Shown here one piece after another: positions 26,076 through 56,583 of a stretch of DNA of 64,000 bases (positions are counted from its first letter, which is position 1; each line of letters begins with the position of its first letter). This DNA is from Mantamonas sphyraenae STR306 (taxonomy: Eukaryota; Protista; CRuMs). The stretch lies in assembly GCA_026936335.1 (NCBI GenBank), contig JAPMXV010000044.1, positions 496,001 through 560,000 on the forward strand, given 5' to 3'. A program made the position numbers and the translations under genes. The notes below the pieces were generated by a model that searched no databases, was not told the origin of the DNA, and saw nothing but the letters and a program-made list of their open reading frames with translations.

Positions 26076-29000
26076 ATGCTACGTGCACGTGTTCCGGGCG
26101 TCTACGCTTTGATTCTTCTCTGCGTTTGCACATTTCTCAGTTCGCCAGCCTCTGCGGCCATCGCAGACTGCCAGGGTAAGCATTGGTGCACTTTGCCTCA
26201 CTCGCTGTTTGCCACGCTCTCCTCTCCACCTCTCTCCGTGGCCATCACGCCACTGCGCTGCCCTCTGAGCCCCCCAGTTTGCCTCCCACCCAGTTTTCCT
26301 TTGGAGCCTGGACCTTTTCCGCATCGGGTGAGTTCCAGCCCGCGTGTTTATCCGGCCCCTCACACCCTGTCTCCACAGCTGGCCAAACCAGTTTCACATT
26401 CACAGGCAGTGCTTGGATGTGCAGTGAAGATGTCAACACTGCCGGCTCGGCCGTCTCCCAGTGGAACGACGTCACGGGCCGTGGAAACGACGCTTCTGCG
26501 AGCGGCAACGCGCGTCCCACCCTTGAGAACAACATCGAGTACAACGAGCGCTTCCGTGACGGCATCAAGTTTGACGGTGTCAACGACTGCTTTGAAATCA
26601 CCAAAGATCCCAACGACGACTTTAACGACGATTTCAACCCATACACAGCAAAGACGGTGGTCATTGCCTTCAAGACGGGCGGCGACCCGGCGGCCCGCCA
26701 GGTTCTTTTTGAACAGGGCGGCGGTACGCGAGGCTTCATCGTCTATATCCTTGCTAACCGTCTTTGGGTCTCTGCGTACAACCTCGACAACGCCCAAGTG
26801 TACTGGGGCGTCAGCTATGTCCAGGACGACCTGTACGCAAACCAGACGAAATACTTTGGCCTGTACCCAAATCAGTACAACCACCTCACCGTGTGGTACA
26901 AGGCCCAAGGCGCCGACGCAGGCCTCGAGCTCTATGTCAACGGCGTCTTCATGGGCAAGAACACAAATGTGGAGCGCCTTTGGACTCACTCTGGCGACGT
27001 CCGCCTTGGATGCTCCGACACAGGCATGCGCTACCACGACGGTAACGGCCACAATGGCTACTTCGGGGGGCATCTCGCAGAGTTTATGTACTGGAACAAC
27101 GTCGCTCTGGACAACACCACCTCGCTCCCTTACGTCTGGACCTTCCTCGACCAGAAATACGGGCCTCACAATTACACCGATGCAGACCGTCAGTTAGCCG
27201 CCCGTTTTTTTTTTCCACGACTCCGGACGCCCTTTCCCCACATCCCCGCACTCCCCGCGTTCTCCTCCTGCCCTGAGTCCAACGAACTGCACCGTGCACT
27301 CTGCGCATGCCATCCTGCCCTCGCTGCTGCTGGATGCACCGGCCAGCGTCACCGTATGAGGCATACCTCAGGTTGGCCTGCGCGGCCGCCGTTTCAGCGT
27401 TTTGGCACCTCGGCTGACACGCACCGCAAAACCACCTCCCGGGTCCCTTCTGCACTCTTCACACAGGTTGCCCCGGGTTCCCCGTAAACCCATGTAGCGG
27501 CCCCACGCACGGCACGTGCTTGCAAAACGCAAACGGCACGCGATACTGCCAGTGCGAGGCAGAATGGATCGGAACCGCCTGCGAGCTTTACAACGGCGAG
27601 CGCAACTTTTGCTACGAAGTCCTGTGGGACCTGGCCAACCCCAACGGGCCCCGCCAGCGCAATTTCAAACCCGTCACTCACTTTCCGGCCGGCCATCCCG
27701 CCGTGTCCAACTGTGGGGGCATTCCGCCCGACGTCAACGGCAACTTCCGCATCCCCAGCACAGGCTTCCACCCCGACGGCTGTGTGCCCAACACTCCCGG
27801 CGCAGCCATCTTTTATTCCTACGACTACCCGGCCTCGTTTTCCGAAAACACAGGCCTCGCCACCGCAGAGTATGCCAACCTCATCATCACCGTGGACGAA
27901 ACTTACAACAGCTCCGTGTTGTGGATCCTCGACAAGAACGGCAATTCCGACGGTGGCCGCGTCGAGGTCTTTCTGGACTCCAAGGTCGTCGGTGGAACCG
28001 GTGTCCAGGTGCTCACCAAAGATGACCCGGCCGCAGACAACACCGTTTCCTGCGTCGGTGCAGGCAACGATTGCTACTTCTGGAACACAAACACGGGTGT
28101 CGGTGACTTTTACTTCCGTTGGGCATCCTGCTGTTCCGATGGTGTTGCTCTTGGCACCATGCCGCGCGAAGTCGACATGAACTACCGCATGAACGTCATT
28201 GCGGGCCTCACCAACTTCCGCATGGCCGAGTTTGACGAGTCCTCCGGTCAGGTGACCTTCTTTGACATCCCGCTCAGCGAGGCTGCAAAGGGCATCCGCA
28301 TCAAGGACCGCACTTGCGAAGCGCAAACCAGCGCCTATTGCGGTCAGTACAAATTCTGCGGCGACTGCACGGCCGACCCGCTGTGTGGTTGGTGCAACGA
28401 AGACCTGCGTTGCCTTGGCAAGGACTTTGCCTCCCTTTGCGTCGGCTCCAAGTTTCCTGTGCCCTTCAGCCTTGAGTGCTGCGGTCAGTGCAGCGACCTG
28501 TGCAACTGTGGCGATTGTGTCGCACGCGAGGGATGTGGCTGGTGCCACGACACGGGCAAATGTCTGTCCGGCTCTCAAGACAAGCCCTGCACAAACTGCA
28601 CCTACTTTGCCACGGACAACTGCGAGACCTGCGGCGGCCCGCTCGACGAGAACCAGCAGCCCGTCGCCTTTGTCGGCGTCAACAACCTCAAGCACATCAG
28701 CTACTGTTCCAACAACGGCACCTGTGACTTTGCTGGCACTCGTAAGTGCACATGCATCCCCACCAAGTGGGGCGACGGTTGCCAGAACGAGTGCAAGGCC
28801 CAGGTCGACGTTGGCGGAGGCGTCATCAAGCCCTGCTCGGGCCACGGTTCCTGCGTCCAGGACGACGGCTCCTGTCGCTGCGACTGTGGCTGGATTGGTG
28901 ACACGTGCAACGTCACTGCTCCGGCCCCGTGTGGTTTGGACACAAACAACGACTGCGTCACAGGCCTCACCGACGGCTCCTGCAACATCACGTGCGGCAA

Positions 29001-32000
29001 GTGCCCTGGCGGAGGTGTCAACTGCCAGCCCACAGGCTACCTCGCCTACAACGGCACCAGCAACAGCACAGAGTGCCGCTGCGTCGAGGGCTGGCGTGGT
29101 CCGTACTGCAACATTTCGTGCCCGGGCATTGACCCGCTCACGGGCGCCGGCACAGCCTGCAACGGCAACGGCACATGCAACGCACTCGGACAGTGCGAGT
29201 GCACACAGTGTTATGAGAACGCAGCAGGGCCCTACAGCACCTGCGTGGAGAAAGGCTGTCCCGCCGGTTGCCCGTCCTCGCAACTGGGTCAGTGCCATTG
29301 CGGCACCTGCTCGTGCCCAGGCCAGTGGAGCGGAGACGATTGTACAACATGTCTCTGTCAGAACGGCGCCATTTGCCACAGCATTCACGGTGAATGCGAA
29401 GACCCGTCCAACGGCAACCCGTGTCTGCCAGGGTTTGCTGGCCTCAAGTGCGAGTACAACTGCTCCCGCGACGGCTTTTGCAACGGCCACGGTGAGTGCA
29501 ACCCAGAGAGTCTGTCTTGCACGTGTGACGAAGGCTGGGTCGGCCCCATCACAAGCCAGTGCAGCCTGGCGTGCAACGCAACCGTAAACTGCAGCGGCAA
29601 CGGCCAGTGCCTGGAGGACGCCTCTTGCTTCTGCAACTTTGGATTCGTCGGCAAGCGCTGCGAGACTCAGTGTGTCAAGGACATCGACGACTGCAACTGC
29701 TACCCGCAGCTCAGCAACGTCTACGTGAGCACCAGCGAGGACGTCGTCACGCCCCTTGTTGTGGACATCACCTCGGCCGCCTTTGACGCAGACTCGGCTA
29801 TCAATTGGTTGGCCTTCGACCTCACCTCTTTGCCCGCCAACGGCACGGTCACGTTTATCGACCGCCCGTCCGGTCGCTTCGGATACCAGCCCAACCCGAA
29901 CTACTTTGGCAACGACACGGTGGGCATCAAGATTTGCGATGTCGAGGGCTTGTGTGCGTCGGCAACCGTTCAGATCCTCGTCGAGTCTGTGAACGATCCT
30001 CCCGTCGCCCTCATCGAGTCCTTTGAGGCCGAGGCTGATGTGTGGAGCTACAGCAAGATGAACGCAACCGACATCGAGGGCGACTCGCTGACGTACTACA
30101 TTCAAACTCCGCCCGCCCTCGGTGTGGTGGAGATCCTCAACAACAAGACTGGCGAGTTTCGGTACAAGCCCTACCCGCTGGTGAACGGCACCGACTCGTT
30201 TACGTTTTACGTCATTGACGACGGCGTGCCGCCCGAGCGATCAAACAACGGCAGCGTGTTCACTCTCATCAACGTGGTCAACCAGGGCCCCACCGCTCAG
30301 AACATGTCTTTTGTGACTGCAGAGGACACCCCTTTGCTCGGTGCCCTGCTTGCCTCGGACCCAGAGTCGCATCCGCTCTTCTTTGAAATCGTCAGCCAGG
30401 GCTCGCTGGGCACGGTCAGCATCCTCAACGTGGCCAACGGCGCCTTCCAGTACGCACCGGACGCCAACGCGTTTGGCACGGATGTGTTTGCCTACCGCGT
30501 GCGCGATGTCTTTTCCGCGTACAGCAACGTCAGCTACGTCACCATGACCATCACGCCCGTCAACGACCTGCCCGTTGTGCTTGGCAACAGCACGTTTGTC
30601 ACGCGTGAGGACACAGAGTACATGGGTGTGCTTAACGCCACGGACGTGGAGACTCCCTTGGCCCTGCAGTTCAACGTGACCAAGCAGGGTGTGCTTGGCA
30701 CGGTGCAGTTCCTGAACAGCACAGGCGGCCTCTACCGCTACACTCCCTTCCTCAACGTGCACGGCGTCGACCGCTTCGAGTTTGAAGTCATCGACCCGGC
30801 CTCCGGGCGCTCGGTCGAGCACGCCTTTGTCAACGTGACCATCCTGGCCGTAAACGACGCCCCCGTGCTGACCACGGCCGTCGCGTCTTTGTCTGCCGTC
30901 AGTGAGGACGCAGACCTGACCCTTGCCGCCGTCAGCGTGAGCGACGTGGACGTCGACGCGCAGGACCTTCGTGTAAACGTCAGCGCAGGCGTCCTGGGCA
31001 ACGTGTGGCTTTCCAGCACCGCCGGCGTGACGCTGTCTGTGGGCAGTGGATCCAACGACCGTGAAACCGTCTTCCAAGGCAACCTGACGTCTGTCAACGC
31101 AGCCTTGGCTCAGATTGTGTTTCGCGCACCGCTGCACGCTTCCGGCAGCACGGAGGTGTGCGTACAGGTGGAAGACCTCGGCCATTCGGGCTTGATGCCG
31201 CTCAGCGCGACGTCCGCCTCGCTGTCAGACGTCGTGTGCACCACCATCACCGTGGGCGCGGTCAACGACGGCCCCAGCGTCACCATGGGCAACGCCACCG
31301 CCGCTGTTTCTGAGGACACTCAATTGACCATTAGCGGCATGAGTGTGTCGGACATCGACGTCGACGTGAACACGCTGCGTGTGAACCTCACCGTGAGCCA
31401 GGGATCGCTGTGGCTGGCTGCAGGCACTGCCGGCCTCACCTTTACCACGGGTGACGGAATCGACGACGCGTTCATGGCTTTCAGCGGCAGCAGGACACAG
31501 GTCAACGCGGCGCTGAGCAAGGTGGTGTACCAGGGCGCGTTGCATTACTTTGGCAACGACACACTGGTGCTCGGAGTCGACGACGCAGGCAACGTGGGCA
31601 CTGGCGGCGTGCTGAGCGCATCGGGCAGCCTTGAGCTCACGGTGGACAGTGTGAACGATGCCCCCGTGCTCAGCCCCATCAGCGCACAAACGGTGAACGA
31701 GGACACAGACTTGACGATCGGCGGCCTCAGCGCAAGCGATGTTGACGTGGCTGCCGCAAACTTGAGCTTGAGCCTGTCTGTGGACGTGGGTACGCTGTAC
31801 GTCGCTGGAACTTCTGCCGTGTCGCCCATCGTTGGCAGCTTGACTGCCATCAATGCAGCGCTGGCAAGCGTGGTGTATCGTGCGCCCGTGCAGTTCAACG
31901 GTGTGGACACCCTTCGCTTGGTCGTGTCCGACTTGGGCAACGCGGGCTTCGGCGGAGTGCTCACCGACGCGGCCAACGTCTCCATCGTGGTGTACAGCAT

Positions 32001-35000
32001 CAATGACGGCCCGCTGCTCACGGTACCCGGAGCACAGGCCACGTCTGAGGATGTGGCCCTGACAATTGCCAGCGGGTTTTCCATCACCGACGTGGACATC
32101 GGGGCGTCTCTGATGCGCCTGAATGTCAGCGTCGGCTCGGTTGGCACCGTGACGCTAGCCAACACCACGGGCTTGCTGTTTGTCACCGGCACGGGCTCCT
32201 TCGACACGGATGTGCGCATGCTCGGCACGCGTACCGCCCTGCAGAACGCCCTCAACGGCATCGTGTACACGCCGAACCTCAACGCCAATGGCGCAGACAC
32301 CATCTCACTGGTCGTGGACGACCAAGGCGCCACGGGCATCGGCGGTGTCCTCGTAGACGCCAAGGCCATCAACGTTACCGTGGACGCAGTCAACGACGCG
32401 CCCTCGTTTGGCGCCCCGGCTGCATACACCGTCACTGAAGACACGCCGCGTGACCTGTACGGCTGGGCGATTGTCGACGTGGACGCGACGCAGGTGCGCG
32501 TCAACATGTCGCTGTCGCACGGCACGCTCACTCTCACGGCCGGTACAGGCGGCCTCACCTTTTTGGTCGGCGACGGCACGGAAGATCGCGTCATGAGCTT
32601 CATGGCGACGCCTTCGGTGGCCGGCAACGCTTTGTTTGGGGCACGCTATCAGCCGGACCTTGACTTTGTGGGCGTCGATGTGGCCGTCATGACCGTGGAC
32701 GACATGGGTCAAACTGGCGCCGGAGGCGTGCAGGTGACCGCTCGCAACGTAACCCTTACGGTGGAGGGAGTGAACGACGCGCCGCTGGTCGTTGTGCCGG
32801 GCACCCTGAGCGCCACCGAAGACGTAGACCTTACTTTGTTGGGTGTGTCTGTGACGGACATTGACGCCGGAGCATCGTCGATTGTCCAGGTCAACGTCAG
32901 CGTGGGTTTTGGCCAACTGACCTTGGCCACCACAGCTGGACTCACATTGGACGTGGGCTCTGGCGCAGGCGACTCGAGCGTGAGCATGCGCGGCAACATG
33001 TCTGCCATCAACGCAGCCCTCAACGGCGCGGTGTATCTCGCCACACAGGACTACAACGGCCAGGACAACCTGACTGTGTGGATGACCGACTACGGCCACA
33101 CAGGCACCGGTGGGGCACAGACTGCCATGCAGAGCACTGTCATCACTGTTGTGGGCCAGAACGACCCCGTGGTGTGGACATTGCCGTACGTGTCGGTTGC
33201 CGTGGACGAAGACACGGATCTGACCATCGCTGGCATCAGTCTGAGCGACGTGGACGTGGCGGCCAACCCGCTTCTCGTCAACGTCAGCGTGGACACGGGT
33301 CGCTTCAGCCTGGCCTCCACCGCCGGGCTGACCTTTGAGGCAGGTATGAGTGGCACGGCAGCCAACCACACTCACGTGAGCGTGCGTGGAACCCTGACTG
33401 CCCTCAACGCAGCGCTGGCCACAGTATTCTACCGCGGCAACGTCAACTACGTGGGCGCTGCACAGCTGACTCTGTACGCAACCGACATGGGCTCGGTGGG
33501 ACTTGGCGGCGCGCGCAACGAGACGCGCAACGTCAGCATCTCCGTACAGGCTGTGAACGACGCACCCGTGCTGAGCGTGGCTCCAGTGAGCGTGTACACC
33601 GTGCTGGAAGAGGCTGCTCTGACCGTCACAGGCATCAGCGTCAGCGACGACGACGTGGCTGCAGGCCAGCTGGGCTTTGAGCTCAGCGCGAGCTATGGCA
33701 CCCTGTCGCTGGGCGGCGTGGCCGGCCTTTCATTTTCGCTGGGCGACGGCGCGAACGACGCCGCCATGCACTTCAACGGCACGGTGACTGCGTTCAACGT
33801 GGCCATGGGAGTGTCGGGCGTGCAGTACGTGGGCAATCTTCACTACTTTGGCCCCGACGTGCTGGTGGTGCGCGTCACAGATTACGGCCAGGTCGGGTCG
33901 GGAGGCGTGCTGAGCGACGTCAAGTTGATCAACGTCAGCGTCACAGCAGTCAACGATGCCCCTGTGTTGAGTGTACCTAGCGCTCAGAGCATCAACGAGG
34001 ACACTCAATTGACGATTGCCGGCGTGAGCGTAACTGACGTGGACGTGGCCGCAAACAGCTTGCGCGTCAATGTCAGCGTGGCACACGGCACCGTGTGGCT
34101 GGCACAGACCACCGGACTGTCGTTTGCACAGGGAGATGGCGTGGCAGATGCCACCATGCAGTTTGCAGGCACGCTGACCGACGTCAACTCCGCCGTTGCA
34201 AGCATCGTCTACCTGGCCAACGTCAACTTTGAGGGCGCCGACGTGCTCGTTGTCTCGGTGGATGACCAAGGCTTTGTTGGAGCTGCCGGGAACGTGCTGT
34301 CGGACAACAAGACAGTGAACATTGCCGTGCAGGCCATCAATGACGCGCCTGTGATCGCTGCCCCTGCTGCCATTACGGCGACCGAGGATGTGCAATTCAC
34401 TCTCAGTGGCGTTAGCGTGACGGACGTGGATGTGGCTGCTCAGGAGCTGCTCTTCAACGTCAGTGCAACTGCAGGCACGCTGTGGCTGGCACAGACAACT
34501 GGGCTCACGTTGCACGTCGGGTCTGGTGCAAACGACGGGGCCATCCACATGCAGGGCACGCTGACGGACGTCAACGCAGCGCTTGCTGGCCTCATCTACC
34601 AGACCAATCTGCACTACAACCTGGGCGACACGATCAGCATGTTTGTGGACGACCTGGGGCACTACGGCGCAGGTGGACGCTTGACAGACACACACTCTGT
34701 CAGCGTGGCCATGGTGGCCATCAACGACAACCCGGTGGTCACTGTGCCATCGTCGCAGTCTGTGAGTGAGGACACCGACCTGACCATCGGCGGCATCAGT
34801 GTGAGCGATGTGGATCAGGCCGGAGGCACCATGCGTGTCCGGCTCGAGGTCACAGAGGGCATCCTCACTCTTAGCACGACCACTGGCTTGACATTCAACA
34901 CGGGCGACGGCTTCCTGGAACCGACCATGGAGTTTACCGGAGACCTGACCACCATCAACACCGCCTTGAACAACATCGTGTACCGCGGCGACATCAACTA

Positions 35001-38000
35001 CTTTGGCGAAGACCGAGTCAAAGTCACGGTGGACGATCAAGGGAACGTGGGCGCAGGCGGGTTTGTGCCCACTGTGGAACACATCAACGTCACGGTCACA
35101 CCCGTGAACGACCCGCCTGCGTTTGGCGTCCCGGGCACACAAAACGTGGACGAGGACACCGAGCTGACCATCTATCTGCTTGGCTTTCTGGTCACCGACG
35201 TGGATGTATTTGATCGCCCCATGATGATCAACCTCAGCTGCAGCAGCTGTGTGATGAACCTGACCACCACGGAGGGACTGACGTTCCTCAAGGGCGACGG
35301 CCTCCTGGACACCGAGCTGTCCTTCCTGGCCAACCGCACATCGGCCAACGCCGCCATGTACACCGTCATTTACCAAGGCTTGCCCGACTTTGCCGGCAGT
35401 GATGCCGTCGAGGCATGGGTTAGCGACGATGGATGGTTCGGCGAGGGAGGCGTCCTCTCGGGTACGGACCGAGTGCCCATTGTGGTGAATCCGGTCAACG
35501 ACGAGGTGGTCATCACGCTGCCGCCAGCGGCCATGGCCAGCGAAGACGTCGACTACTCCATATCGGGACTCACGATCACAGACGTGGACATTGCAAACGG
35601 CACGTTCAGCGTCAACCTGACCGTCACAAACGGTTTGCTAACGCTCGCCAGCACCGAGGGACTCGTGTTTGCTGAAGGCGACGGCGTCAGCGATCGCATC
35701 ATGCGCTTCGATGGCAACGAAACGAACGTCAACCGTGCACTGGCCAACATGACCTATCTCGGCGACCTGAACTGGTACGGCACGGACATGTTGCTCGTGG
35801 AGGCGACCGACAACGAGCCGAACAACGCGACGTCGACGTACAAGAACTATGTGATCAACGTGCTGCCGGTGAACGACCCGCCGGCAATCACGGTGCCATC
35901 TCCAAAGTACTTTGAAGTGAGCGAAGACACAGACCTGACTCTGAGCGGCTTCAACGTGACAGACCTGGACGCGTTTGGAGGCGACCTGTTCTTCAACGTG
36001 AGCGTCAACAACGGAATGTTCTCACTGGCAACCACGAGTGGACTGGCCTTCCAATTTGGCGACGGCACACAGGACCGCGAGATGCGCTTCACATGTACGA
36101 TGACCACGTTCCGCGCGGTCACGGCAACGCTGGTGTACCGCGGGAATTTGCACTACAACGGATTGGATACGATGACAGTGACTGTGAACGACCAGGGCGA
36201 GAGTGGCAGCTTCGGCCTGATGCCCCTCGAGGATGTCGACAGCCTAGTGATCAACGTGACGGCTGTGAACGACGTGCCTACGTGGACGGTGCCCGGTGTG
36301 CAGAACGTGGACGAAGACGTGGAACTGACGCTGCTGGGAATCGTGCTGTCGGATGTCGACTCGGCAACAGACTCGTTGTACGTGGAGCTCAGCGTCAAGA
36401 ACGGCACGTACGCGCTCAACGCGACCACAGGCCTGACTTTTAGCCTGGGCAGTGGCACAGGAGATCGCAGGAGCGTGTTTACGGGTCGCGTGACCGACGC
36501 AGCGGCGGCGTTGGCGGAAGTGCGCTACACAGGCGACTTTGAGTTTAGCGGCGTGGACGCACTGTCTCTGTTTGTGTCGGACCAGGGCTACAACGGCTTT
36601 GGAGGCACGCTGACAGCCAACAACAGCGTGCAGATCAACGTCAACATTGTCAACGATGCACCTGACGTGTGGGTGCCTGGTGCTCAGAGCGTGAGCGAGG
36701 ACACCGATTTGACGCTGAACGGCATCAACGTGACGGACGTGGACGTGTTTGGCGACACCATGCGCGCCAACCTGAGCGTCGCATCTGGCCAGCTGACCAT
36801 TGTGAACGCAGGTGGCGTCTCGTTTGTGGGTGGCACGAGCAACGGCGCAAGCAACGTGCGTGTGGCCGGAACTGTGACGCAGGTGAACACGGCGCTGGGC
36901 CAGGTCGTGTATCGCGGCAACCAGGACTTCTACGGATCAGACGCCGTAGTGTTGGTGGTGGACGACGGTGGATCCACAGGAGCCGGCGGCGTACGCGTGG
37001 TGACGCGACAGGTCAACGTGACTGTGGTGTCGATCAACGACGCCCCCGTGGTGACTGTGCTGTCCCCGGCCAGCGTGCTTGAAGACGTGGACCTGACCGT
37101 GGGCGTCACTGTGGCCGATGTCGACATCGACGCCGACGCAATGCACGTGAGTGCCAATGTCACGTCGGGCGTCTTGTCGCTGGCGAGCACGACTGGTCTC
37201 ACGTTCATCCGCGGCGACGGCGCGAGCGACGCATGGCTGGAGTTTACTGGCACGGTGACCGCGGTGAACTCGGCACTGGGTGTGATTGTTTACCGCGGCA
37301 ACCAGGACTTTTACGGCGTGGACACACTGCGCCTGGATGTCGACGACCAAGGCTTCCGTGGCGCCGGTGGCGTGCTGTTGAACAGCCAGAGCGTGGCAAT
37401 TACAGTGAACAGCGTCAACGATCAGCCCGTGATTGGCCTCGTGGGCGGCGTGACCGTTTCAGAAGACAACAGCCTGCTCATCAACGGACTGAGCGTGACG
37501 GACGTGGACGTGCTTGGCGATCACCTGTGGCTGAACATGAGTGTGAGCCACGGCGTAATTTCGCTGTATGCAGGCGCCGGCGCTGCTGCATCGCAACAGC
37601 TGTTGGTCACCAATCTGACATCGATGAACGCAGCCATTCTGAGCGTTCGTTACACACCGGACACCAACTTTTACGGCAACGACGCGCTGGTGCTGCACCT
37701 CACGGACCAGGGCTACCGTGGCGCGGGTGGTGTGCAACAAGACATCCAGAGTGTTGCCATTACGGTGGTGGGTGAGAACGACGCACCCACCCTTACAGTC
37801 GCGTCGACAGGCGTTTCCACGAACGAGGACACACCCGTGAATGTGGGCGCCATGAGCGTGAGCGACGTGGAAGCCGCGGCGCTGGGTTCCGCTTTGCGTG
37901 TCAACGTGAGCGTGAGCGAAGGCGCACTGAACCTCGCGTCCACCGCCGGCCTTACCTTTTCCCAGGGCGACGGCAGCGCAGACGCCTCCATGGTGTTCAC

Positions 38001-47000: not shown

Positions 47001-50000
47001 CGTCGGCGGCCTGACGTTTGTGCAGGGCGACGGCGTGAGTGACGCTGTGGTGGAGTTCCAGGGCACGCTGACTGCAGTGAACGCGGCGGTGAACGGAGTG
47101 ACGTACCGTGGCAACGCGAACTACTTTGGCAGCGATGCTGTGGTGGTTAGCGTGAGCGACGGGTCGCTGAGTGTGAACGGCACGGTCGCAGTGAGCGTGA
47201 GTGCTGTGAACGACGCGCCTGTGGTGACGGTGCCTGGAGCACAGAACGTGAACGAGGACACGGACCTGACGATCACTGGTGTGAGCGTGAGCGACGTGGA
47301 CATTGGCGCAGGTGTGATGAGCGTCAACGTGAGTGTGAGCAGCGGCACGGTTGTGCCAAGCACAGTGTCTGGCAACTTGACTGCGGTGAACGCCGCGCTG
47401 GCGAGCATTGTGTACCGCGGAAACAGCGACTTTAACGGGGCGGACGTGGTGACAGTGCGTGCTGGAGACGGGCTGCTTGTGGGCGTGGGCACGATCAACG
47501 TGAACGTGGCCAACGTGAACGACGCACCGAGTGTGAGTGTGCCGAGCAGCGCGAGCGCCGCCGAGGACACGGATGTCGTGATCAACGGCATCAGCGTGAG
47601 CGACGTGGACATTGGAGCGGGCAGCCTGACGGTGAAACTGAGCGCGGGACAAGGCGTTGTGAGCCTTGCTGGCGTCGGCGGCCTGACGTTTGTGCAGGGC
47701 GACGGCGTGAGTGACGCTGTGGTGGAGTTCCAGGGCACGCTGACTGCAGTGAACGCGGCGGTGAACGGAGTGACGTACCGTGGCAACGCGAACTACTTTG
47801 GCAGCGATGCAGTGGTGGTTAGCGTGAGCGACGGGTCGCTGAGCGTGAACGGCACGATCGCAGTGAGTGTGAGTGCTGTGAACGACGCGCCTGTGGTGAC
47901 GGTGCCTGGAGCACAGACTGTGGACGAAGACACGGACCTGACGATCACTGGTGTGAGCGTGAGCGACGTGGACATCTTTGCGGGCACCATGGTCGCCAAC
48001 GTGAGCGTGGCCAATGGAGCCGTAAGCCTGGCGACGACCGCTAGTCTGACGTTTGTGCGCGGAGACGGAGTGGCAGACCCGTCGGTGGAGTTCCAAGGAA
48101 CGCTGACCGCAGTGAACGCAGCCTTGGCCAGCATTGTGTACCGCGGCGACCCGAACTGGTACGGCGTGGACAGTCTGGTTGTGCAAGCCACAGACGGCAG
48201 CGACCTGGCAACAGGCAGTGTGAACGTGTTTGTGAGCGCGGTGAACGACGCGATCAACGTGACGCACGGAGGTGTTGTGAACGGCTTTGAGGACACAGAC
48301 GTGTCGCTGAGCGGAGTGCTCGCCGTGGTGGACGTGGACAGCGGCGTGGTTGTGGTGAACGTGAGTGTGTCACAGGGAAGCGTGAGCCTGGGCACGACGA
48401 CCGGGCTTGTGTTTGTGCAGGGAGACGGGGTGGCGGACGCGTTTATGGAGATGCAAGGCGAGAAGAGCGCGATGAACACGGCGCTGAACAGCATGGTGTA
48501 CCGCGGGGCAGCCAACTGGAACGGTCTGGAAGTGATGACCATTGGAGCGCGCGATGTGAACGGCAGCAGCGTTGTGGTGTACCAAAGTGTGAACATCGCT
48601 GCAGTGAACGACGCACCGAGCGTGAGTGTGCCGAGCAGTGCGAGCGCGGCCGAGGACACGGATGTCGTGATCAACGGCATCAGCGTGAGCGACGTGGACA
48701 TTGGAGCGGGCAGCCTGACGGTGAAGCTGAGCGCAGGACAGGGCGTTGTGAGCCTTGCTGGCGTCGGCGGCCTGACGTTTGTGCAGGGCGACGGCGTGAG
48801 TGACGCTGTGGTGGAGTTCCAGGGCACGCTGACTGCAGTGAACGCGGCGGTGAACGGAGTGACGTACCGTGGCAACGCGAACTACTTTGGCAGCGATGCT
48901 GTGGTGGTTAGCGTGAGCGACGGGTCGCTGAGTGTGAACGGCACGGTCGCAGTGAGCGTGAGTGCTGTGAACGACGCGCCTGTGGTGACGGTGCCTGGAG
49001 CACAGAACGTGAACGAGGACACGGACCTGACGATCACTGGTGTGAGCGTGAGCGACGTGGACATTGGCGCAGGTGTGATGAGCGTCAACGTGAGTGTGAG
49101 CAGCGGCACGGTTGTGCCGAGCACAGTGTCTGGCAACTTGACTGCGGTGAACGCCGCGCTGGCGAGCATTGTGTACCGCGGAAACAGCGACTTTAACGGG
49201 GCGGACGTGGTGACAGTGCGTGCTGGAGACGGACTGCTTGTGGGCGTGGGCACGATCAACGTGAACGTGGCCAACGTGAACGACGCACCGAGTGTGAGTG
49301 TGCCGAGCAGCGCGAGCGCCGCCGAGGACACGGATGTCGTGATCAACGGCATCAGCGTGAGCGACGTGGACATTGGAGCGGGCAGCCTGACGGTGAAACT
49401 GAGCGCAGGACAGGGCGTTGTGAGCCTTGCTGGCGTCGGCGGCCTGACGTTTGTGCAGGGCGACGGCGTGAGTGACGCTGTGGTGGAGTTCCAGGGCACG
49501 CTGACTGCAGTGAACGCGGCGGTGAACGGAGTGACGTACCGTGGCAACGCGAACTACTTTGGCAGCGATGCTGTGGTGGTTAGCGTGAGCGACGGGTCGC
49601 TGAGTGTGAACGGCACGGTCGCAGTGAGCGTGAGTGCTGTGAACGACGCGCCTGTGGTGACGGTGCCTGGAGCACAGAACGTGAACGAGGACACGGACCT
49701 GACGATCACTGGTGTGAGCGTGAGCGACGTGGACATTGGCGCAGGTGTGATGAGCGTCAACGTGAGCGTGAGCAGTGGCACGGTCGTGCCGAGCACAGTG
49801 TCTGGCAACTTGACTGCGGTGAACGCCGCGCTGGCGAGCATTGTGTACCGCGGAAACAGCGACTTTAACGGGGCGGACGTGGTGACAGTGCGTGCTGGAG
49901 ACGGACTGCTTGTGGGCGTGGGCACGATCAACGTGAACGTGGCCAACGTGAACGACGCACCGAGTGTGAGTGTGCCGAGCAGCGCGAGCGCCGCCGAGGA

Positions 50001-53000
50001 CACGGATGTCGTGATCAACGGCATCAGCGTGAGCGACGTGGACATTGGAGCGGGCAGCCTGACGGTGAAGCTGAGCGCAGGACAGGGCGTTGTGAGCCTT
50101 GCTGGCGTCGGCGGCCTGACGTTTGTGCAGGGCGACGGCGTGAGTGACGCTGTGGTGGAGTTCCAGGGCACGCTGACTGCAGTGAACGCGGCGGTGAACG
50201 GAGTGACGTACCGTGGCAACGCGAACTACTTTGGCAGCGATGCAGTGGTGGTTAGCGTGAGCGACGGGTCGCTGAGTGTGAACGGCACGACCGCAGTGAG
50301 CGTGAGTGCTGTGAACGACGCGCCTGTGGTGACGGTGCCTGGAGCACAGACTGTGGACGAAGACACGGATCTGACGATCACTGGTGTGAGCGTGAGCGAC
50401 GTGGACATTGGCGCAGGTGTGATGAGCGTCAACGTGAGCGTGAGCAGCGGCACGGTTGTGCCGAGCACAACTACTGGTACACTCACGGCGGTGAACGCCG
50501 CGCTGGCGAGCATTGTGTACCGCGGAAACAGCGACTTTAACGGGGCGGACGTGGTGACAGTGCGTGCTGGAGACGGATTGCTTGTGGGCGTGGGCACGAT
50601 CAACGTGATTGTCAACGCAAACAACGACCAAATCGGCATTGACGTGCCACTGGCCCAGACCGTTGCCGAGGACACCAACCTTGTGTTGCCAGCGATCAAC
50701 GTGACCGATGTGGACATCGGAGCCAACAACATGGAGGTGACGTTGAACGTGACATCTGGCACGATTGTGCTGGCTCAGACGACCGGGTTGACGTTCTCTC
50801 AAGGGGATGGCACTACCCCGAGTTCGGTGCAGCAGTTCCTCGGCTCGTTGACAAACAGCCGTGCAGCTCTGAGTGGAGTGACCTACCGAGGCGCGCTGAA
50901 CTATTTTGGTGCAGACGCACTCGTGGTGACTGTAAACGACCAAGGTTCCGTTGGATCGGGAGGTACCACCGTGGCTTCCAAGACGGTGGCCATCACGGTG
51001 ACTCCTGTGAACGACGAACCGTTGGCCGAGGACTCGAAGTGGGAGGTGGACGAAGACAAGTGGGTGCTGGTGCAGCTCAACGGAACAGACGTGGAAACTC
51101 CATCGACGTCGTTGACGGCCATCATTCGCACGCTGCCTGCTCGCGGCCGACTGTTCCAAAGCACTGCAGCTGGAACCAAGGGTGCACAGATCGTCGGCGC
51201 GCACACTGCGGTGAGCGATGCGCAGCGACGGGTGATCTACCAGCCGGACGGCGCGAGTGGTACTGGCAGCTTCTTTGCTCTGTTCGATTTTGCGGTCGTG
51301 GATAGCGGAGCACTGGCAAGTTCGGTGTACGGAAGGGTCAACGTATCTGTGGTGGCTCTTCCTGCCGGCCCAGCCATTGTGAGCGCGGTGTGGCGTGATC
51401 CGGCAAACGACGACATTGTGCTGGATGTGAACGACACGTTGCGCGTGTGTTTTGACGTGGCCACAAATCAGCCCACACTGATTGACAAGAGTGCTGTGGA
51501 CGCGGTGTTTGCATTTAACGTGGGCAGTGCATACAGTGGCTCGTGGGTGACCGAGTCGTGTGCCGACCTGCGCGTCGAGGCGTTGGCCGGTGCGTACAGC
51601 GTGAACCTGGGAGTGGACACGGTGAGTGTGGTCGGATTGCTGCGTAATGCAGCGGAGCGCACGCTTGTGTCGAACAGCTCTCGTGTGGTGGGAGGCAACT
51701 TGGGAACCAAGAGTGGCCCTTCGCTGATGAGCGTGTATGGCGAGGATCCGGGCAACCGCGACAACGAGTGGAGCGTGGGTGACACGGTTGTGCTTGTGTT
51801 TAGCGAGGCGACAAACGAGGTGAACGTGAGCACGCAGGCGCAGGTGGACGCCGTGGTTCGTTTCGACGGGGGCGTGCTTGGAAGTGCGTACCATGGATCG
51901 TGGCGAAACAACCGCACGCTGGTGATTACGATTGACGCGCTGCACGGTGGTGCTGCGCCTGTACTGAGTGCACTGAACGTGACCATGCTTGCTGGTGGCG
52001 ATGTGCGCGCCGGCGACGCTGGATCGTCGCTTCCCTCTACGGCGACGTTTACGGGAGTGGGCGGCACGTTTGGCACGTATGACCCACAGTGGGTGCTTCT
52101 GGTTGCAGTGAACGCGAAAACGCTTCACGTGTACATGAACATGCCCACGAAGTTTGAGCCTGTGGCAACCAAGGCACAGGTGGACGCGTTCTTGCGACCG
52201 CCGTTGGCCCTGCTGTCGAACTTTACCGGGTACAATGGTACGTGGCTGAACAGCACGGTGCTGGTGCTGAACGTGACCGAGACGATTCCTGTGATCCCTG
52301 GACTCGTGGTTACGCCAACGCTGCCGCCTGGACCCAAGATCACGCTGTTGGAGACGTCTGATCCGGACGACGCGGACGCGGTGCACGGTGTGGGCGATGT
52401 GATCAGCATCTACTTTGATGTGGCCACGAACCAACCTACGGTTGCGACGAAGCCGGATCTGGACTCGCTGTTTGCGTTTTCGCAACCGTTGGGTGCAGAC
52501 TACACCGGTGTATGGCGCAACGCGAGCGTACTGGACATTACGGTGGTGTCGATGGTGGGCACGCCGTCGATGGACTTGATCACCAACGTGCTGAACCTGA
52601 CTGTGACGGGCAACATTCTGACTGCCGACTCTTTCAGTTCGAGCAGCGCAGGTGTGGCAAGTGCGTCTGCGGTGGGCTCATGGGGCTCGCTGCCTGGACC
52701 GAACGTGACAGTGGCCGAGTTCAAGGACGACGGCAACAGCAACGCTGTGTACGACCTGAACGACTACCTCGAAATCCAGTTTGACCGCAACACGAACCGA
52801 CCTGCCATGAGCAACAAGGCGGCAGTTGACTCGCACATCACTTTCTCGCAAGAGATTGGACGCAACTACCGCGGCGTGTGGGCAAACGCACGTACGCTGC
52901 AAATCCGCCTGACCGAGCTTGGCACGACTGTGCCTACGCTGCGCAGCGCGACATCTGGTAGCAGTGTGGTGCAGCGCAGTGGCACCGGACCCTTGCGCGT

Positions 53001-56000
53001 GGAGGTTGTGGGAGACATCCGCAACGACCTGGGGACGTCGCTGCCTGCGCGTGGATCGCTGGTTGTGGGAGGAAACTTTGGCACGCTTGCGGGACCGTGT
53101 GTGACACGTCTTGTGGCGGAGGATTTGGACAACAAGGACAACACCTACGGTAACGGCGATGCACTGGTACTTGTGTTTAGCGAAGCGACGAATCAGCCGC
53201 CGGTTGGAAGCAAGAGCGCAGTGGACGCGCTGATGACCTTTTCGCAGCCGATTGGCAGTGATTACGTGGGCAAGTGGCGCAACGCGAGTGCTCTGGAGAT
53301 TGAACTGGTGGACACGGCGGGTGTGAGCTCTGCACCGTCGCTTGGGGTGCTTACGGTGACGCTTGTGAGCGGGATCCGGAACGCTGCAGAGACGTCGCTT
53401 GTGAGCGCATGCGTGTCGCCGACACTGGTTGGCAACTGGGGCACGTTTATTCCGCCGCCCGTGGTGCCGCCTGTGTGCCCGGAGTACTTCTGGGTGCTGA
53501 TTGGCGTGTTTCTGTTGGGACTGGTGGTGAGCCAAGCGTGGTTCTACCAGCGTGCTGCAACTCGCAAGAAGCTGCTCGAGGCGTTGCGAGGACGCGAGAA
53601 GATGAAGGTGGTGGACATGTTTGGTGTGATGCCACGTGAGGTGGACAGCGACAGCGACGAGGGAGACAGCGACCGTGAGAGTGGAGAAAGCAGCAGCGAG
53701 GGAGAGCGTTCGCGCACGGTGGGACATCGTGTGATGGGCAAGAACAAGGTGGGCCCAGCAGAGAGCGTGGTGGCACAGAGCCTTAAGAAGCAGGCAGTGG
53801 CGGAAGACAAGGCCGTGTTCAGGATGAAGGAGCGGCTGGGCTTTGTGCTGGAGCTTGTGTTTGGCGGGCTTGGGTGCACGTTCTGCGTGCTGTGTGAGAT
53901 CTGGTGGGTGGTGCCAATTGTGATTGTGGAGATGATTCTGTACTGGCTGGTGTACTACTGGCAATTCAAGCGATCGAACCAGGTTGCTGCGGAGGTGCTG
54001 CTCGCGGAGGAGAAGGAGAAGGTTGTTGCTGAAGAGAGGAAGCCGAGCGCGGCTATGGAGAAGCCGCTGAGCCAAACAAAGGGCGAGATGATGGCGATGG
54101 AGCTGAGCGACAGCAGCGACGAGGAGGAAGCGCAGGCAGTTGAGGTGTCGCTGAGGCGGGAATCAGACGGGTACGTGCCCAAGATCCCGAACATGCTGCC
54201 GATGCTGAAGGCTGCCAAGAGAATGCGTCCGGAAAGGAGCACGGGAAGCAGCGGGGAAGACCCGGAGCTGCCGAGTGTACCGACTTTGCCGTCGCTGGGC
54301 AACGAATGGAGTGGATCAGAGGACGATCAGGAGGGCCTGACACCAGCGGCGTTGGCAGCGTTGAACGCAAACAAGAACGTGAGCGCTGGCGGGCGCGTGG
54401 CGGCGGTGCCGTCGATGCCGCAGCTTGTGCGCCTGGCGACGAACCCGAAGCTGCGCAACAAGCCGAGTGCACCGAGCAAGGGCGAGCGCAAGGGGAAGAA
54501 GGGAAGGAAGGGAAGGAAGAAGGGCGGCAAGAAGAGCGGAGCTGGTGGGGAGTTTGCCGGGCTGGGGATGGACATGCGGCCGCCGAGTGACGACAGCGAC
54601 AGCGGAGCAAGCAGCTCGTCGGAGGACGAGGGAGTGCCTCGCTTGCCGCAGATCCCGACGCTTGCGAGCAGGTCGAGCAGCAGCACAAGCAGCAGGAGCC
54701 GCGAGAGCGTGGAAGGAATGACAGTGGACGGAGGTGTGAATCTGCCTTCTCTGCCAAAGGGAATGCGTGGAGCGTACAAGGGCAAGATGAAGGGCAAGAT
54801 GGTTCCGCTGCCACCGCCTCCGGGCAAGGGAAGCGTGGGCGGAAGTGCGACGCTTGCTGGGGCCGGATCTGTTGTGGGCAGCTATGGCAAGGAGGAAATG
54901 CGTACGATTGAGATCCGTGAGCCAAGGAGCGGTGGAATGGACAGCGGAGTGCTGCCGTCGATGCCAGCCAACGCGAGCGGACACGACTTGAGGATGGACG
55001 GTTACTTGCAGGCGTTGTTCCGAGAGGATTACGAGACGAGCGAAGACCAGGCTGCGGAGGAGGTTACGCTGGAGAAGGGAGTGGTGCGTGAGGAGTTTGA
55101 AGATGAGATGGCGATGGCAGCTGGGGTTGGAGCCGGGTCCGGGGGAGCCGGAGGGGTTGAAGGATTGCGCAAGCACGGGGAAGGAAAGGAAGGGGAAGAG
55201 GGAGAGGAGGAGGAAGGTGAAGATGGTGCAGCGTACGAGGAGGAGGAGGAGGGAGAGGAGGAGGGAGAGGAAGGCGAGGAGGGAGAGGAGAAGACTGAAA
55301 AGGAGAAGAGCGTGCTGCTGAACCGGGTGAGGAACAGGCGTGTGGGAAGCATGATGAAGGGCAAGGGACCGCTGAGGAACAGGAGGTTGGAGGGAGTGCA
55401 GGGTGGAGCAAGGGCACGCGGAGTGAGCAGCGGACAGATGAGCTTCATGAAGTTTGGTGGATCGAGCGCGAACCTGACGGGAGCAAGCCGACGAGCGGAG
55501 GCCAAGAGGAGGATTGAGGCAGCGGAGAGTAAGTGGATTGGGCTGATGGAGACGATGAGCATGCAGACGAGCAGCGAGCGTGAAGAGACGAACAAGCCGA
55601 GGCTGGAGGTGAGCTCGAAGTTGAGGAGGTTGGTGTCGACGGCGGTGATGCGAGCGGAGGTGGTGACGAGCAAGACGGAGAAGGATGTGGTTGCGATTGT
55701 GAGGAACACGTACGACGGAAAGAGCAACAGTGACCTGTTTGAGAGCAGCAGCTCGAACGCGGAAAAGGTGAAACGACTGCCGGACTTTGTGTACGACACG
55801 CTGCGCGTGGAATTTGGAACGAAGAAGGCGACAGAAACGGAGCTGTGGAAGCTGATTGTGGCGCTGACGGAGCTGAGGAAGCAGAACGCAGAGCTGGACA
55901 TGTTTAGCGAGTTCCTGGAGGAGAGCCGTACGCTGGATGAGCTTGTGTTTTTCCTGTATGTGAGGACGGTTGTGCTGAACACGTTTACAGGCGTGCTGGT

Positions 56001-56583
56001 GCCGACCAACTCGTCGCTGTGCATGCCTGAGTACATCTGTATGAAGCGTGCAGCGGCGGTTGTGAAGCGAGTGCTGGGCTTCCAGAGCGCGTCGGGTCAG
56101 TACGACTTTTTGAGGCGGGTGATGGAGCAGAGCGTGTCGCTGAAGGACGAAGAGGTGAAGAAGAGCGTGTACATGCCTGCCGGAAAGGATGTGGCGTGGG
56201 CAGAGAGTCAGGACGACGAGCTGCCGCAGAACAGGCGTGTGGCGCTGGTGAAGTTTGAGACGATGCTGCTGGAGGAGTACGACGGAATCCAGAAGAGGCA
56301 TAGGGAGCGTCTGTCGATGGCGTTTGACCAGATCGACGTGAACGGAGACGGCGAGCTGGACGTGGAGGAGTTTGCGGCGGTGTGCCGTGCGATTGACGAG
56401 AACATGGAGGAAGAGAAGATGGAGCAGATGTACTCTGAGGGCACGGACGGTGGGACGCGTGTGATGGACCGCGAGCAGTACGACCGTGTGACGTGCAAGG
56501 TGTTGCTGCGGGAGTTGATTCTGGCAGATGTGCGTGCAGCTGGAGTTGGGAGGAGCGGAGGCGAGCGGATGAAGCGAGGATGA
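26076..56583 (+). CDS. Giant (~10,008 aa) cell-surface adhesin/receptor: signal peptide, LamG/concanavalin-like, EGF, unknown beta domain, 2 PSI, multiple EGF, ~60 cadherin-like (NDAP) repeats, ~6 second-type repeats, 3 TM, cytosolic low-complexity region, helical domain and EF-hand; exons 26076-26175, 26379-27188, 27467-56583
   Basis: Signal peptide MLRARVPGVYALILLCVCTFLSSPASA. Two phase-1 introns (GTAAGC..CACAG and GTCAGT..CACAG) join it in frame to ORF 27520..56583, giving 30,027 nt. Repeats have the signature NDAP...EDT...V(S/T)DVD...Y..NFNG.D. TM segments at ~53482-53550 and ~53836-53967. EF-hand DVNGDGELDVEE. Confidence 0.9.
45448..50620 (+). repeat. Near-identical intragenic higher-order tandem repeat: 2,433-bp unit x2 plus a partial copy, each unit = X(363)-Y(363)-A(363)-B(309)-A-B-A with an inner 672-bp period
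   Basis: The unit start aacgacgcgcctgtggtgacggtgcctggagcacagactgtggacgaag recurs at 45448, 47881 and 50314. Identical 221-aa antisense ORFs recur every 672 bp (46449/47121; 48882/49554). Confidence 0.93.

Follow-up and report, generated by a model that had tools for sequence, protein, structure and literature searches.

The window analysed here spans 64,000 nucleotides of Mantamonas sphyraenae STR306 (assembly GCA_026936335.1, contig JAPMXV010000044.1, positions 496,001 to 560,000 of the forward strand), and its plus strand harbored between positions 26076 and 56583 a putative three-exon gene for a giant protein with a distal head, a stalk of tandem repeats, a membrane anchor and a C-terminal tail (Table 1). 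A single frame ran over 9,721 codons without a stop (27418-56583). The frame of exon 2 stopped at 27487 and the giant frame, a different one, opened at 27418; exon 2 can therefore be joined to exon 3 only by splicing. With both phase-1 GT-AG introns removed the exons would join in frame, and the gene model totals 30,024 nt or 10,008 amino acids (aa). A preliminary description, made from the sequence alone, had proposed a spliced frame with a 29-kb terminal exon, a signal peptide, transmembrane segments and a tail of about 870 aa, all of which were recovered: the long frame and its two in-frame introns, a hydrophobic signal-peptide-like start in exon 1, and a transmembrane helix and hydrophobic hairpin followed by 870 aa. 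Paralogs on three other contigs of the assembly (C29, C27 and C61) carried a LamG exon immediately 5' of the head and in matching orientation, and a homolog from Cymbomonas (P0223) combined Laminin_G_3 (40.1 bits) and the head domain within one chain, which indirectly supports the gene model. The longest contig of the published M. sphyraenae transcriptome, at 32.28 kb (PMC10492846), is of a size that would fit the giant gene. The exons were taken one at a time as search queries.

Table 1. Features of the giant gene in the window, and loci elsewhere that share its tail module.
Feature	Position	Strand	Basis
Exon 1: start codon and hydrophobic, signal-peptide-like N-terminus, 33 codons + 1 nt	26076..26175	+	sequence reading, phase arithmetic
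Intron 1 (putative): GTAAGC...CAG, 203 nt, phase 1	26176..26378	+	splice consensus and frame
Exon 2: LamG-like (concanavalin A-like jelly-roll) domain, borderline	26379..27188	+	Pfam Laminin_G_3
Intron 2 (putative): GTCAGT...CAG, 278 nt, phase 1	27189..27466	+	splice consensus and frame
Exon 3	27467..56583	+	sequence reading
Head part 1: EGF-like knot, ~230-aa beta-sandwich without Pfam name, two PSI knots	27467..28638	+	AlphaFold2 model, homologs
Head part 2: Cys-rich EGF-like array, teneurin type	28639..29769	+	Pfam EGF_Teneurin
Stalk: 60 matches (56 full-length) of a ~121-aa tandem-95/Cadherin_4/Big_9 repeat	29770..51282	+	HMM, Pfam, NCBIfam
Recent internal duplication: two 2,433-bp units	45430..50295	+	repeat search
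Membrane-proximal region: second repeat type (unnamed, ~115-125 aa), about six copies	51283..53457	+	translation reading
Transmembrane helix 1, then a basic stretch (8 K/R in 22 aa)	53473..53541	+	hydropathy, flanking charge
43-aa hydrophobic segment with central Pro and basic flanks on both sides, probable helical hairpin	53842..53970	+	hydropathy, charge
Low-complexity charged tail rich in E, G, S and K	53971..55686	+	composition, sequon density
Helical and EF-hand module	55687..56445	+	32% identity to C2 ORF
Canonical 12-residue EF-hand loop DVNGDGELDVEE	56335..56370	+	Pfam EF-hand_7, motif fit
Stop codon	56581..56583	+	end of giant frame
Tail-module loci	L023:3872-8731, L024:3833-8632, L115:3622-7611	-	
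Tail-module loci	L114:851-5998, L113:1637-6016	+	

The stalk was composed of a bacterial-type repeat. A hidden Markov model (HMM) iterated on the giant itself matched residues 785-7955 of the frame, with full-length units of 100 to 126 aa, and 60 matches were obtained where about 60 repeats had earlier been counted by hand. The consensus, with VNDAP, ED, DVD, G...NAAL and D-G among its conserved positions, reproduced the signature already noticed in the preliminary description. Curated models placed the repeat in the style of bacterial giant adhesins, as that description had proposed: Pfam Cadherin_4 (PF17803) covered 25 and 17 stretches with 532 and 300 bits (cut-off 25.1), Big_9 (PF17963) reached 278 and 194 bits (cut-off 23.6), and the NCBIfam tandem-95 model NF012211, whose cut-off is 90, gave 120.6 bits for a piece of 1,018 aa. 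Cadherin_5 (Pfam) also matched the stalk. A search of giant proteins with the stalk gave 63 matches at E <= 1e-5 and 25 to 46% identity. Those carrying names were bacterial tandem-95, VCBS or Ig-like proteins, among them proteins of Bellilinea (the second-best cluster), Reyranella, Ramlibacter, Rhodopirellula and Magnetococcales; the bacterial giants had tens of tandem copies in proteins of 5,000 to 8,000 aa. The Mantamonas repeat HMM scored up to 132 bits on bacterial-type repeats, within the range of the giant's own repeats.

Relatives of a single repeat were found by tblastn at 126 bacterial genome loci (one genome per species), in hosts that included Novosphingobium, Desulfomonilaceae, Hymenobacter, Verrucomicrobiales, Planctomycetota, Magnetococcales, Nitrospirota, Solirubrobacteraceae, Acidobacteriota and a cyanobacterium. 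Because these matches covered residues 1-113 or 1-120 of the 121-aa repeat (33 to 47% identity), the whole unit, and not just its VNDAP motif, is of the bacterial repeat type; repeats inside the giant shared a median identity of 40%. The classical Cadherin family (PF00028) gave no Pfam match at E <= 0.01 over the whole protein, in agreement with the earlier remark that a metazoan cadherin signature was lacking. In the C-terminal half, the Pfam and NCBIfam scans yielded no HemolysinCabind or type I secretion system model, and no N-terminal retention module was found. Two known memberships were rejected: that of the RTX (type I-secreted) adhesins, since RTX repeats and secretion signal were not found and the C-terminus consists of a membrane anchor and a predicted cytosolic tail, and that of the classical cadherins, since PF00028 was unmatched and the tail matched EF-hand families only. 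The best outside match of the stalk, P0001 from a 24-kb contig of a JGI metagenome (41% identity over 1,001 aa), carried, beside its tandem-95 repeats, 29 repeats of the classical Cadherin family (PF00028) and, at the C-terminus, a LamG domain. Pfam was uninformative on the non-repeat parts of two Cys-rich matches, P0014 and P0016.

The stalk repeats displayed the ligand positions of a solved Ca2+-binding adhesin. When a profile of 47 repeats was compared with PDB, entry 6XI1 was matched at E 1e-12, while one repeat triple searched with phmmer gave no match there. The entry shows a four-repeat extender from AhLap, an adhesin of Aeromonas hydrophila, which holds three Ca2+ ions per domain junction and loses its rigidity without Ca2+ (PMC7493085), the ligands being V127/N128/D129, E143/D144, D160/D162, E166 and D220 (PMC7493085 Table 4). 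In the HMMER alignment, which covered the first ~70 residues only, V127/N128/D129, E143/D144 and D160/D162 of AhLap paired with VND, ED and DVD of the Mantamonas repeat. The aligned positions were conserved in 89 to 100% of the giant's repeats (N9 0.98, D10 1.00, E24 1.00, D25 0.89, D37 0.98, D39 0.98; D113, further on, 0.98) and were conserved in bacterial-type repeats too, which bears out the Ca2+-binding style first attributed to them. Since the AhLap ligands align with the repeat and the positions are conserved, a Ca2+-stiffened rod is a well-founded prediction for the stalk. Domains of this kind are 4 to 5 nm long each, so that about 64 of them would form a rod of roughly 0.25 to 0.3 micrometre. 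The preliminary description had further considered the protein convergent on the giant-cadherin design. This is doubtful, as VNDAP, ED and DVD belong to the same Ca2+-binding motif set as those of cadherin-like domains, and the common motif set may reflect distant common ancestry.

The head was related to eukaryotic proteins. Exon 2 matched Pfam Laminin_G_3 at E 4.5e-6, and the first 764 aa of exon 3 were Cys-rich, with about 29 Cys per 200 aa in the EGF-like array, where EGF_Teneurin scored 35.2 bits (cut-off 24.3) and EGF_TEN and EGF_2 stayed below their cut-offs. An AlphaFold2 model of residues 28-390, built from a 46-sequence alignment, reached a predicted local distance difference test (pLDDT) score of 86 and a predicted template modelling score of 0.77. 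Within it, residues 313-361 superposed on solved PSI structures from plexin A2, Sema4D, Met and RON, with Z scores of 4.9-5.7 and a root-mean-square deviation of 1.5-2.0 A over 40-48 residues (21-30% identity), the PSI family being unmatched in the Pfam scan of the head. The sandwich core of about 150 residues was weakly similar to adhesin and cohesin sandwiches (Z about 5; Foldseek and structure comparison), and a shape search of the ESM Atlas gave one good match, an unnamed and partly eukaryotic cluster.

An exhaustive HMMER search with the head retrieved 388 cluster representatives at E <= 0.001, among which all those with names were eukaryotic. The best, from choanoflagellates, covered about 700 aa at 35 to 39% identity (Hartaetosiga, Salpingoeca infusionum, Acanthoeca and Choanoeca flexa), and further named ones were an MMETSP transcript, Hondaea fermentalgiana, Cymbomonas tetramitiformis and the ancyromonad Fabomonas tropica, the matches in Hondaea, Cymbomonas and Fabomonas being shorter than the choanoflagellate ones. 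The best homolog, P0064, lay on a gene-dense contig whose adjoining genes carried RING, MYND, Hint and LRR domains. The scanned homologs paired the head module with EGF, Kringle, TRP, chitobiase-type or REJ domains, and Cadherin_4 was not found in any of them. A word- and length-based protein search with the head gave no match, a blank that reflects the limits of that search since the exhaustive one found 388 proteins. On homology, the head is of eukaryotic stock, as had been claimed for it. The PSI and EGF assignments made earlier likewise stood, by fold and by score respectively. The proposed likeness to attractin, MEGF8 and teneurin extended to PSI knots and teneurin-type EGF, but not to the YD shell, Kelch or CUB domains, which Pfam did not find. 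As a side observation, the ~230-aa beta-sandwich and the two PSI knots (27550-28638) appeared as a conserved eukaryotic module without a Pfam name, held by choanoflagellates, a labyrinthulid, a green alga and an ancyromonad among others, with varied partner domains.

Between stalk and membrane lay a second repeat (frame residues 7956-8680, the membrane-proximal 725 aa), without Pfam or NCBIfam match and with the motif G-D-x5-F-x3-T-N-x-P ... V-D ... F-S ... G-x-Y-x-G-x-W-x-N. This region and the membrane helix were common to loci on contigs C32, C61, C28, C74, C13 and C39 (34 to 48% identity); a frame of 6,185 aa on C13 contained many copies of the second repeat. The first transmembrane helix was conserved in paralogs, and the C61 paralog had a second hydrophobic segment at a similar place. 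The probable hairpin would leave the tail in the cytosol, a topology deduced from hydropathy and charge; potential N-glycosylation sequons occurred at 1.7 to 1.9 per 100 aa in the ectodomain vs 0.4 in the tail.

The tail ended in a putative Ca2+-binding module. Its loop DVNGDGELDVEE fitted every position of D-x-[DNS]-x-[DNS]-G-x-[ILV]-x-x-x-E, EF-hand_7 reached 30.0 bits, equal to its cut-off of 30, and matches to chains of centrin and troponin C had E ~4e-8; the partner EF-hand looked degenerate by eye. The EF-hand described previously was therefore canonical and on the predicted cytosolic side, but instead of a lone EF-hand the protein ends in a helical and EF-hand module of about 250 aa. 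This module aligned with residues 1063-1320 of a 1,620-aa open reading frame (ORF) on contig C2 (32% identity, E 6e-37) and recurred at four further loci, C-terminal in all five proteins, which were about 1,300 to 1,700 aa long. An Ax_dynein_light domain was found over cut-off in three of them and below cut-off in one, and the fifth showed a coiled coil only; the giant's tail itself is devoid of that domain. A word-based protein search limited to 0.55-1.75 times the query length gave no relatives of the module, which is no evidence of absence, and the head-sharing paralogs were without it. Modelled by AlphaFold2 without an alignment, the module reached a pLDDT of 37. The tail's link to the cilium is a hint only.

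The gene displayed the marks of its host. GC content at third codon positions (GC3) lay between 0.71 and 0.77 in every part, from exon 2 through head, stalk and proximal region to the tail. Overall GC in the window was 57 to 63%; the host assembly counted 25,061,354 bases in 78 contigs, and the published FALCON assembly of the species has 25.06 Mb, 78 contigs and 59.19% GC (PMC10492846). At column 48 of the repeat an N-x-S/T site was present in 68% of the units in the giant and 73% of those in its paralogs, as against 1% of 289 bacterial-type repeats, in which this region has the consensus V-T-L. The predicted N-glycosylation site at this column is a shared derived mark of the Mantamonas family. 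The stalk held 129 sequons vs 84 +/- 8 after shuffling, and from this excess together with the column-48 site the repeat domain appears adapted to the eukaryotic secretory pathway. Judged by its introns, its uniform GC3 and the lineage-specific site, the gene is native to Mantamonas.

In a FastTree phylogeny of 362 repeats, 68 of the 73 Mantamonas repeats fell on one side of a split together with three outsiders (support 0.88). The nearest outside repeats belonged to P0016, the Magnetococcales protein P0022, P0027 and then several others; the N-termini of P0020 and P0022 are presumably of the bacterial giant-adhesin type. The tree was unrooted, its sequences were chosen for their likeness to Mantamonas, and other eukaryotic tandem-95 repeats were left out. 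The tree is compatible with, but no proof of, a single ancient acquisition and later expansion within the lineage. Expansion has a recent episode: the two duplicated units (45430-47862 and 47863-50295) were 99.0% identical with the frame kept, each made of three 672-bp two-domain units that were 96 to 100% identical mutually. Tandem Repeats Finder, with a period limit of 500 bp, gave no match, the real periods of 672 and 2,433 bp exceeding that limit.

The giant is not a one-off; it belongs to a family, within which its unbroken frame is the longest. PF17803 matched many loci of the host assembly, on contigs C61, C27, C29, C32, C28, C13, C56 and C4, and at least three paralogs (C29, C27 and C61) shared the head at 62 to 71% identity. 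The C61 paralog (G000:C61:56752-76813, minus strand, ~6,800 aa) had the same order of parts from LamG to two hydrophobic segments, spread over three overlapping, shifted frames (3,601, 2,075 and 1,215 aa). Either the stalk of this paralog is interrupted by introns, or the shifts reflect frameshift errors or pseudogenisation. In the other two (G000:C27:155869-224285 and G000:C29:713784-749452) the head was followed by tens of kb of Cadherin_4 repeats with a period of ~2.7 kb and identical scores. The C29 repeats reached about 749 kb, the longest contig of the assembly being 751 kb, and C32 and C28 held repeat arrays ending in proximal repeats and a membrane helix. The C27 and C29 arrays may run to the contig end, and C32 and C28 may be the other halves of larger genes broken by assembly.

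Around the giant gene, a divergent minus-strand gene appeared to start near 25912, so that the giant's promoter and 5' leader would have to fit into only about 160 bp. Many long open frames also lay antisense to it (minus strand, 27394-56886), the largest being 1,371 aa at 48370-52485; these are probably by-products of GC-rich repetitive coding sequence and not genes.

Taken together, the locus is best explained as a native nuclear gene for a fibrillar adhesin or receptor of 10,008 aa, anchored in the membrane and with an extracellular N-terminus, a reading to which a probability of about 0.7 was assigned. The signal peptide would direct the protein into the secretory pathway, and the far end would expose the likely ligand-binding parts, namely the LamG-like jelly-roll, the unnamed beta-sandwich, the two PSI knots and the EGF array. 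About 58 tandem-95 (cadherin-like) beta-sandwich domains would follow, their junctions locked by Ca2+ at the conserved VND, ED, DVD and D113 positions, and with the six membrane-proximal domains they would make up the rod. One transmembrane helix and the hydrophobic hairpin would anchor it in the membrane, leaving the tail of ~870 aa on the cytosolic side with the helical and EF-hand module at its end. For the stalk domain an ancient bacterial source is most likely; the domain would then have expanded in the Mantamonas lineage, gaining its N-glycosylation site. The observation of the preliminary description was confirmed and its interpretation partly supported: architecture, bacterial-type stalk and Ca2+-ligand positions were supported by the searches, whereas splicing into one mRNA, the topology, Ca2+ stiffening, adhesion and the direction of transfer are inferences.

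Several points weigh against this reading. That the gene yields one mRNA from which two introns, and no others hidden in frame, are removed is a prediction from splice consensus and frame, and the copy number of repeats is least certain inside the 99%-identical 2.4-kb duplication. Ca2+ stiffening and adhesion are predictions from sequence and analogy. The LamG domain noted earlier was found again with a significant E value, but its 27.3 bits fall just below the Pfam cut-off of 27.6 and the assignment is borderline. The ESM Atlas search also returned weaker Myxococcota look-alikes of the head's beta-sandwich, and so a deeper bacterial link for this sandwich is conceivable. As to the stalk, the best repeat match (P0001) is a metagenomic protein, and the tree cannot give the direction of transfer because it was unrooted, similarity-sampled and without other eukaryotic tandem-95 repeats. 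A Cadherin_4 cluster of the ESM Atlas was recorded from Euglenozoa, and an expressed gene of Vermamoeba best matches a tandem-95 protein (PMC7125106); the tandem-95/Cadherin_4 domain is therefore not confined to bacteria.

A refinement of the adhesin reading gives the protein a role in locomotion, as a traction adhesin of the ciliary membrane whose head would stick to the substrate and whose EF-hand tail would link it, controlled by Ca2+, to axoneme-associated transport, by analogy with FMG-1B of Chlamydomonas. Mantamonas, a member of CRuMs, is a marine gliding flagellate (PMC10492846), the tail module recurs in five other loci, of which three carry Ax_dynein_light over cut-off and a fourth below it, and FMG-1B is moved by intraflagellar transport under Ca2+ regulation (PMC3679542; bioRxiv 10.1101/2020.08.17.240366). 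The link is indirect, as the giant's own tail has no Ax_dynein_light, the length-limited word search gave no relatives, and the head-sharing paralogs do without the module; this refinement is tentative, with perhaps one chance in five. The fuller version, in which a rod of bacterial domains, a eukaryotic head and a tail coupled under Ca2+ to axonemal transport together drive ciliary gliding, is somewhat less likely still. If true, it would be an independent invention resembling FMG-1B near the base of Amorphea, and bacterial gene transfer would have supplied a key part of a eukaryotic motility apparatus.

The stalk domain could instead be an old eukaryotic one, inherited vertically and lost or unrecognised elsewhere, with the bacterial likeness reflecting shared cadherin-like superfamily ancestry. 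The Euglenozoa clusters, the tandem-95-like Vermamoeba gene, the fully host-like composition and the near-grouping of Mantamonas repeats in the tree would agree with such descent. The repeats are, however, as close to those of many bacterial lineages over 121 aa as they are mutually, the eukaryotic head homologs examined had no stalk domain and the named giant matches were bacterial, which makes vertical descent unlikely. Slightly less likely again is a structural role, in which the protein would be a coat or spacer, a glycocalyx-like brush keeping the membrane off surfaces or protecting it. Heavy predicted N-glycosylation of the stalk, with its excess over shuffled sequence, and a multigene family with fast repeat turnover speak for it, but a complex head kept at 62-71% identity among paralogs, and at 35-39% between Mantamonas and other eukaryotes, points to recognition of a ligand, and the long regulated tail fits signalling better.

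More doubtful is that the 29-kb frame is not one unit, and would correspond to several transcripts, contain spliced-out stretches in frame, or carry a repeat number that assembly made too high or too low. The one-transcript model comes from the sequence, the near-identical 2.4-kb duplication lies in a PacBio assembly, the C29 and C27 paralogs may break at contig ends and the C61 paralog is in shifted frames. Against this, 9,721 stop-free codons at about 60% GC cannot be due to chance, the domains follow a coherent order between signal peptide and tail, the same order recurs in the C61 paralog from LamG to its two hydrophobic segments, and the longest transcriptome contig is of a size that would fit. 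Bacterial contamination or a very recent insertion of the stalk, for which the xenic culture with its bacterial contigs filtered out (PMC10492846) might speak, was rejected as extremely improbable, since one frame spans eukaryote-type head, stalk and EF-hand tail, spliceosomal-type introns lie upstream, GC3 is uniform, many paralogous loci occur on other contigs, the glycosylation site is lineage-specific, and RTX and type I secretion features were not found by Pfam or NCBIfam.

CRuMs are a little-studied lineage near the base of Amorphea, and we know of no account of how Mantamonas sticks to or glides over surfaces. The giant gene and its paralogs are concrete candidates for its adhesion or gliding machinery. 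They would offer a clear example of a bacterial-type adhesin domain inside a eukaryotic type I membrane protein, adapted to its host by upstream introns, codon use and a predicted N-glycosylation site. No description of this architecture was found in the literature searched.

Among known systems, the bacterial tandem-95 giants (NF012211, PF17803, PF17963) share the repeat of ~100-120 aa, its conserved positions and its tens of copies. They are without the eukaryote-type signal peptide, the LamG/PSI/EGF head, the C-terminal membrane anchor and the cytosolic tail of the Mantamonas protein, and their repeats are without the N-x-S/T at column 48. The RTX adhesins (AhLap, PDB 6XI1; MhLap, MpIBP, LapA, SiiE) likewise form a rod of tandem beta-sandwiches with linker Ca2+ and distal ligand modules, whereas their RTX nonapeptides, type I signal and N-terminal retention module were not found in the Mantamonas giant. 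Polarity would also be reversed, the N-terminus of the Mantamonas protein being distal and its C-terminus anchored by a membrane helix.

Several eukaryotic proteins resemble single parts. Teneurin, attractin, MEGF8 and plexin have PSI knots and teneurin-type EGF in common with the Mantamonas head, but Pfam scans of the giant gave no Kelch, CUB, Sema or YD-shell; by sequence, the head is truly related to unnamed proteins that occur in choanoflagellates, labyrinthulids, green algae and ancyromonads. FMG-1B of Chlamydomonas is likewise a very large, heavily glycosylated membrane protein of a gliding flagellate (glycosylation being predicted in Mantamonas) and works with Ca2+ signalling and axonemal transport; the likeness is by description, and its domain make-up appears unrelated. 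The Trailins of diatoms are adhesive trail proteins of gliding protists whose domain was reported as bacterial-derived (bioRxiv 10.1101/2023.03.06.531300). Their domain is Choice-of-Anchor-A and they are secreted as trail material, whereas the Mantamonas giant has another domain and would be a membrane-anchored rod.

The metazoan cadherins (Fat, Dachsous, CELSR, protocadherin-15/cadherin-23) are likewise type I proteins with a long chain of Ca2+-linked beta-sandwiches and analogous linker motifs (acidic ED, DxD, xNDxP), some members having EGF or LamG domains. The Mantamonas giant differs by the lack of a PF00028 match and of a cadherin or catenin-binding cytoplasmic domain, and its LamG and EGF domains are distal where those of metazoan cadherins are membrane-adjacent. 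It would represent an independent, non-animal case of a long, Ca2+-stiffened beta-sandwich chain on a membrane anchor, which bears on how cadherin-like adhesion systems arise. The system is best filed as a fibrillar Ca2+-dependent adhesin design that was probably rebuilt as a eukaryotic type I membrane protein.

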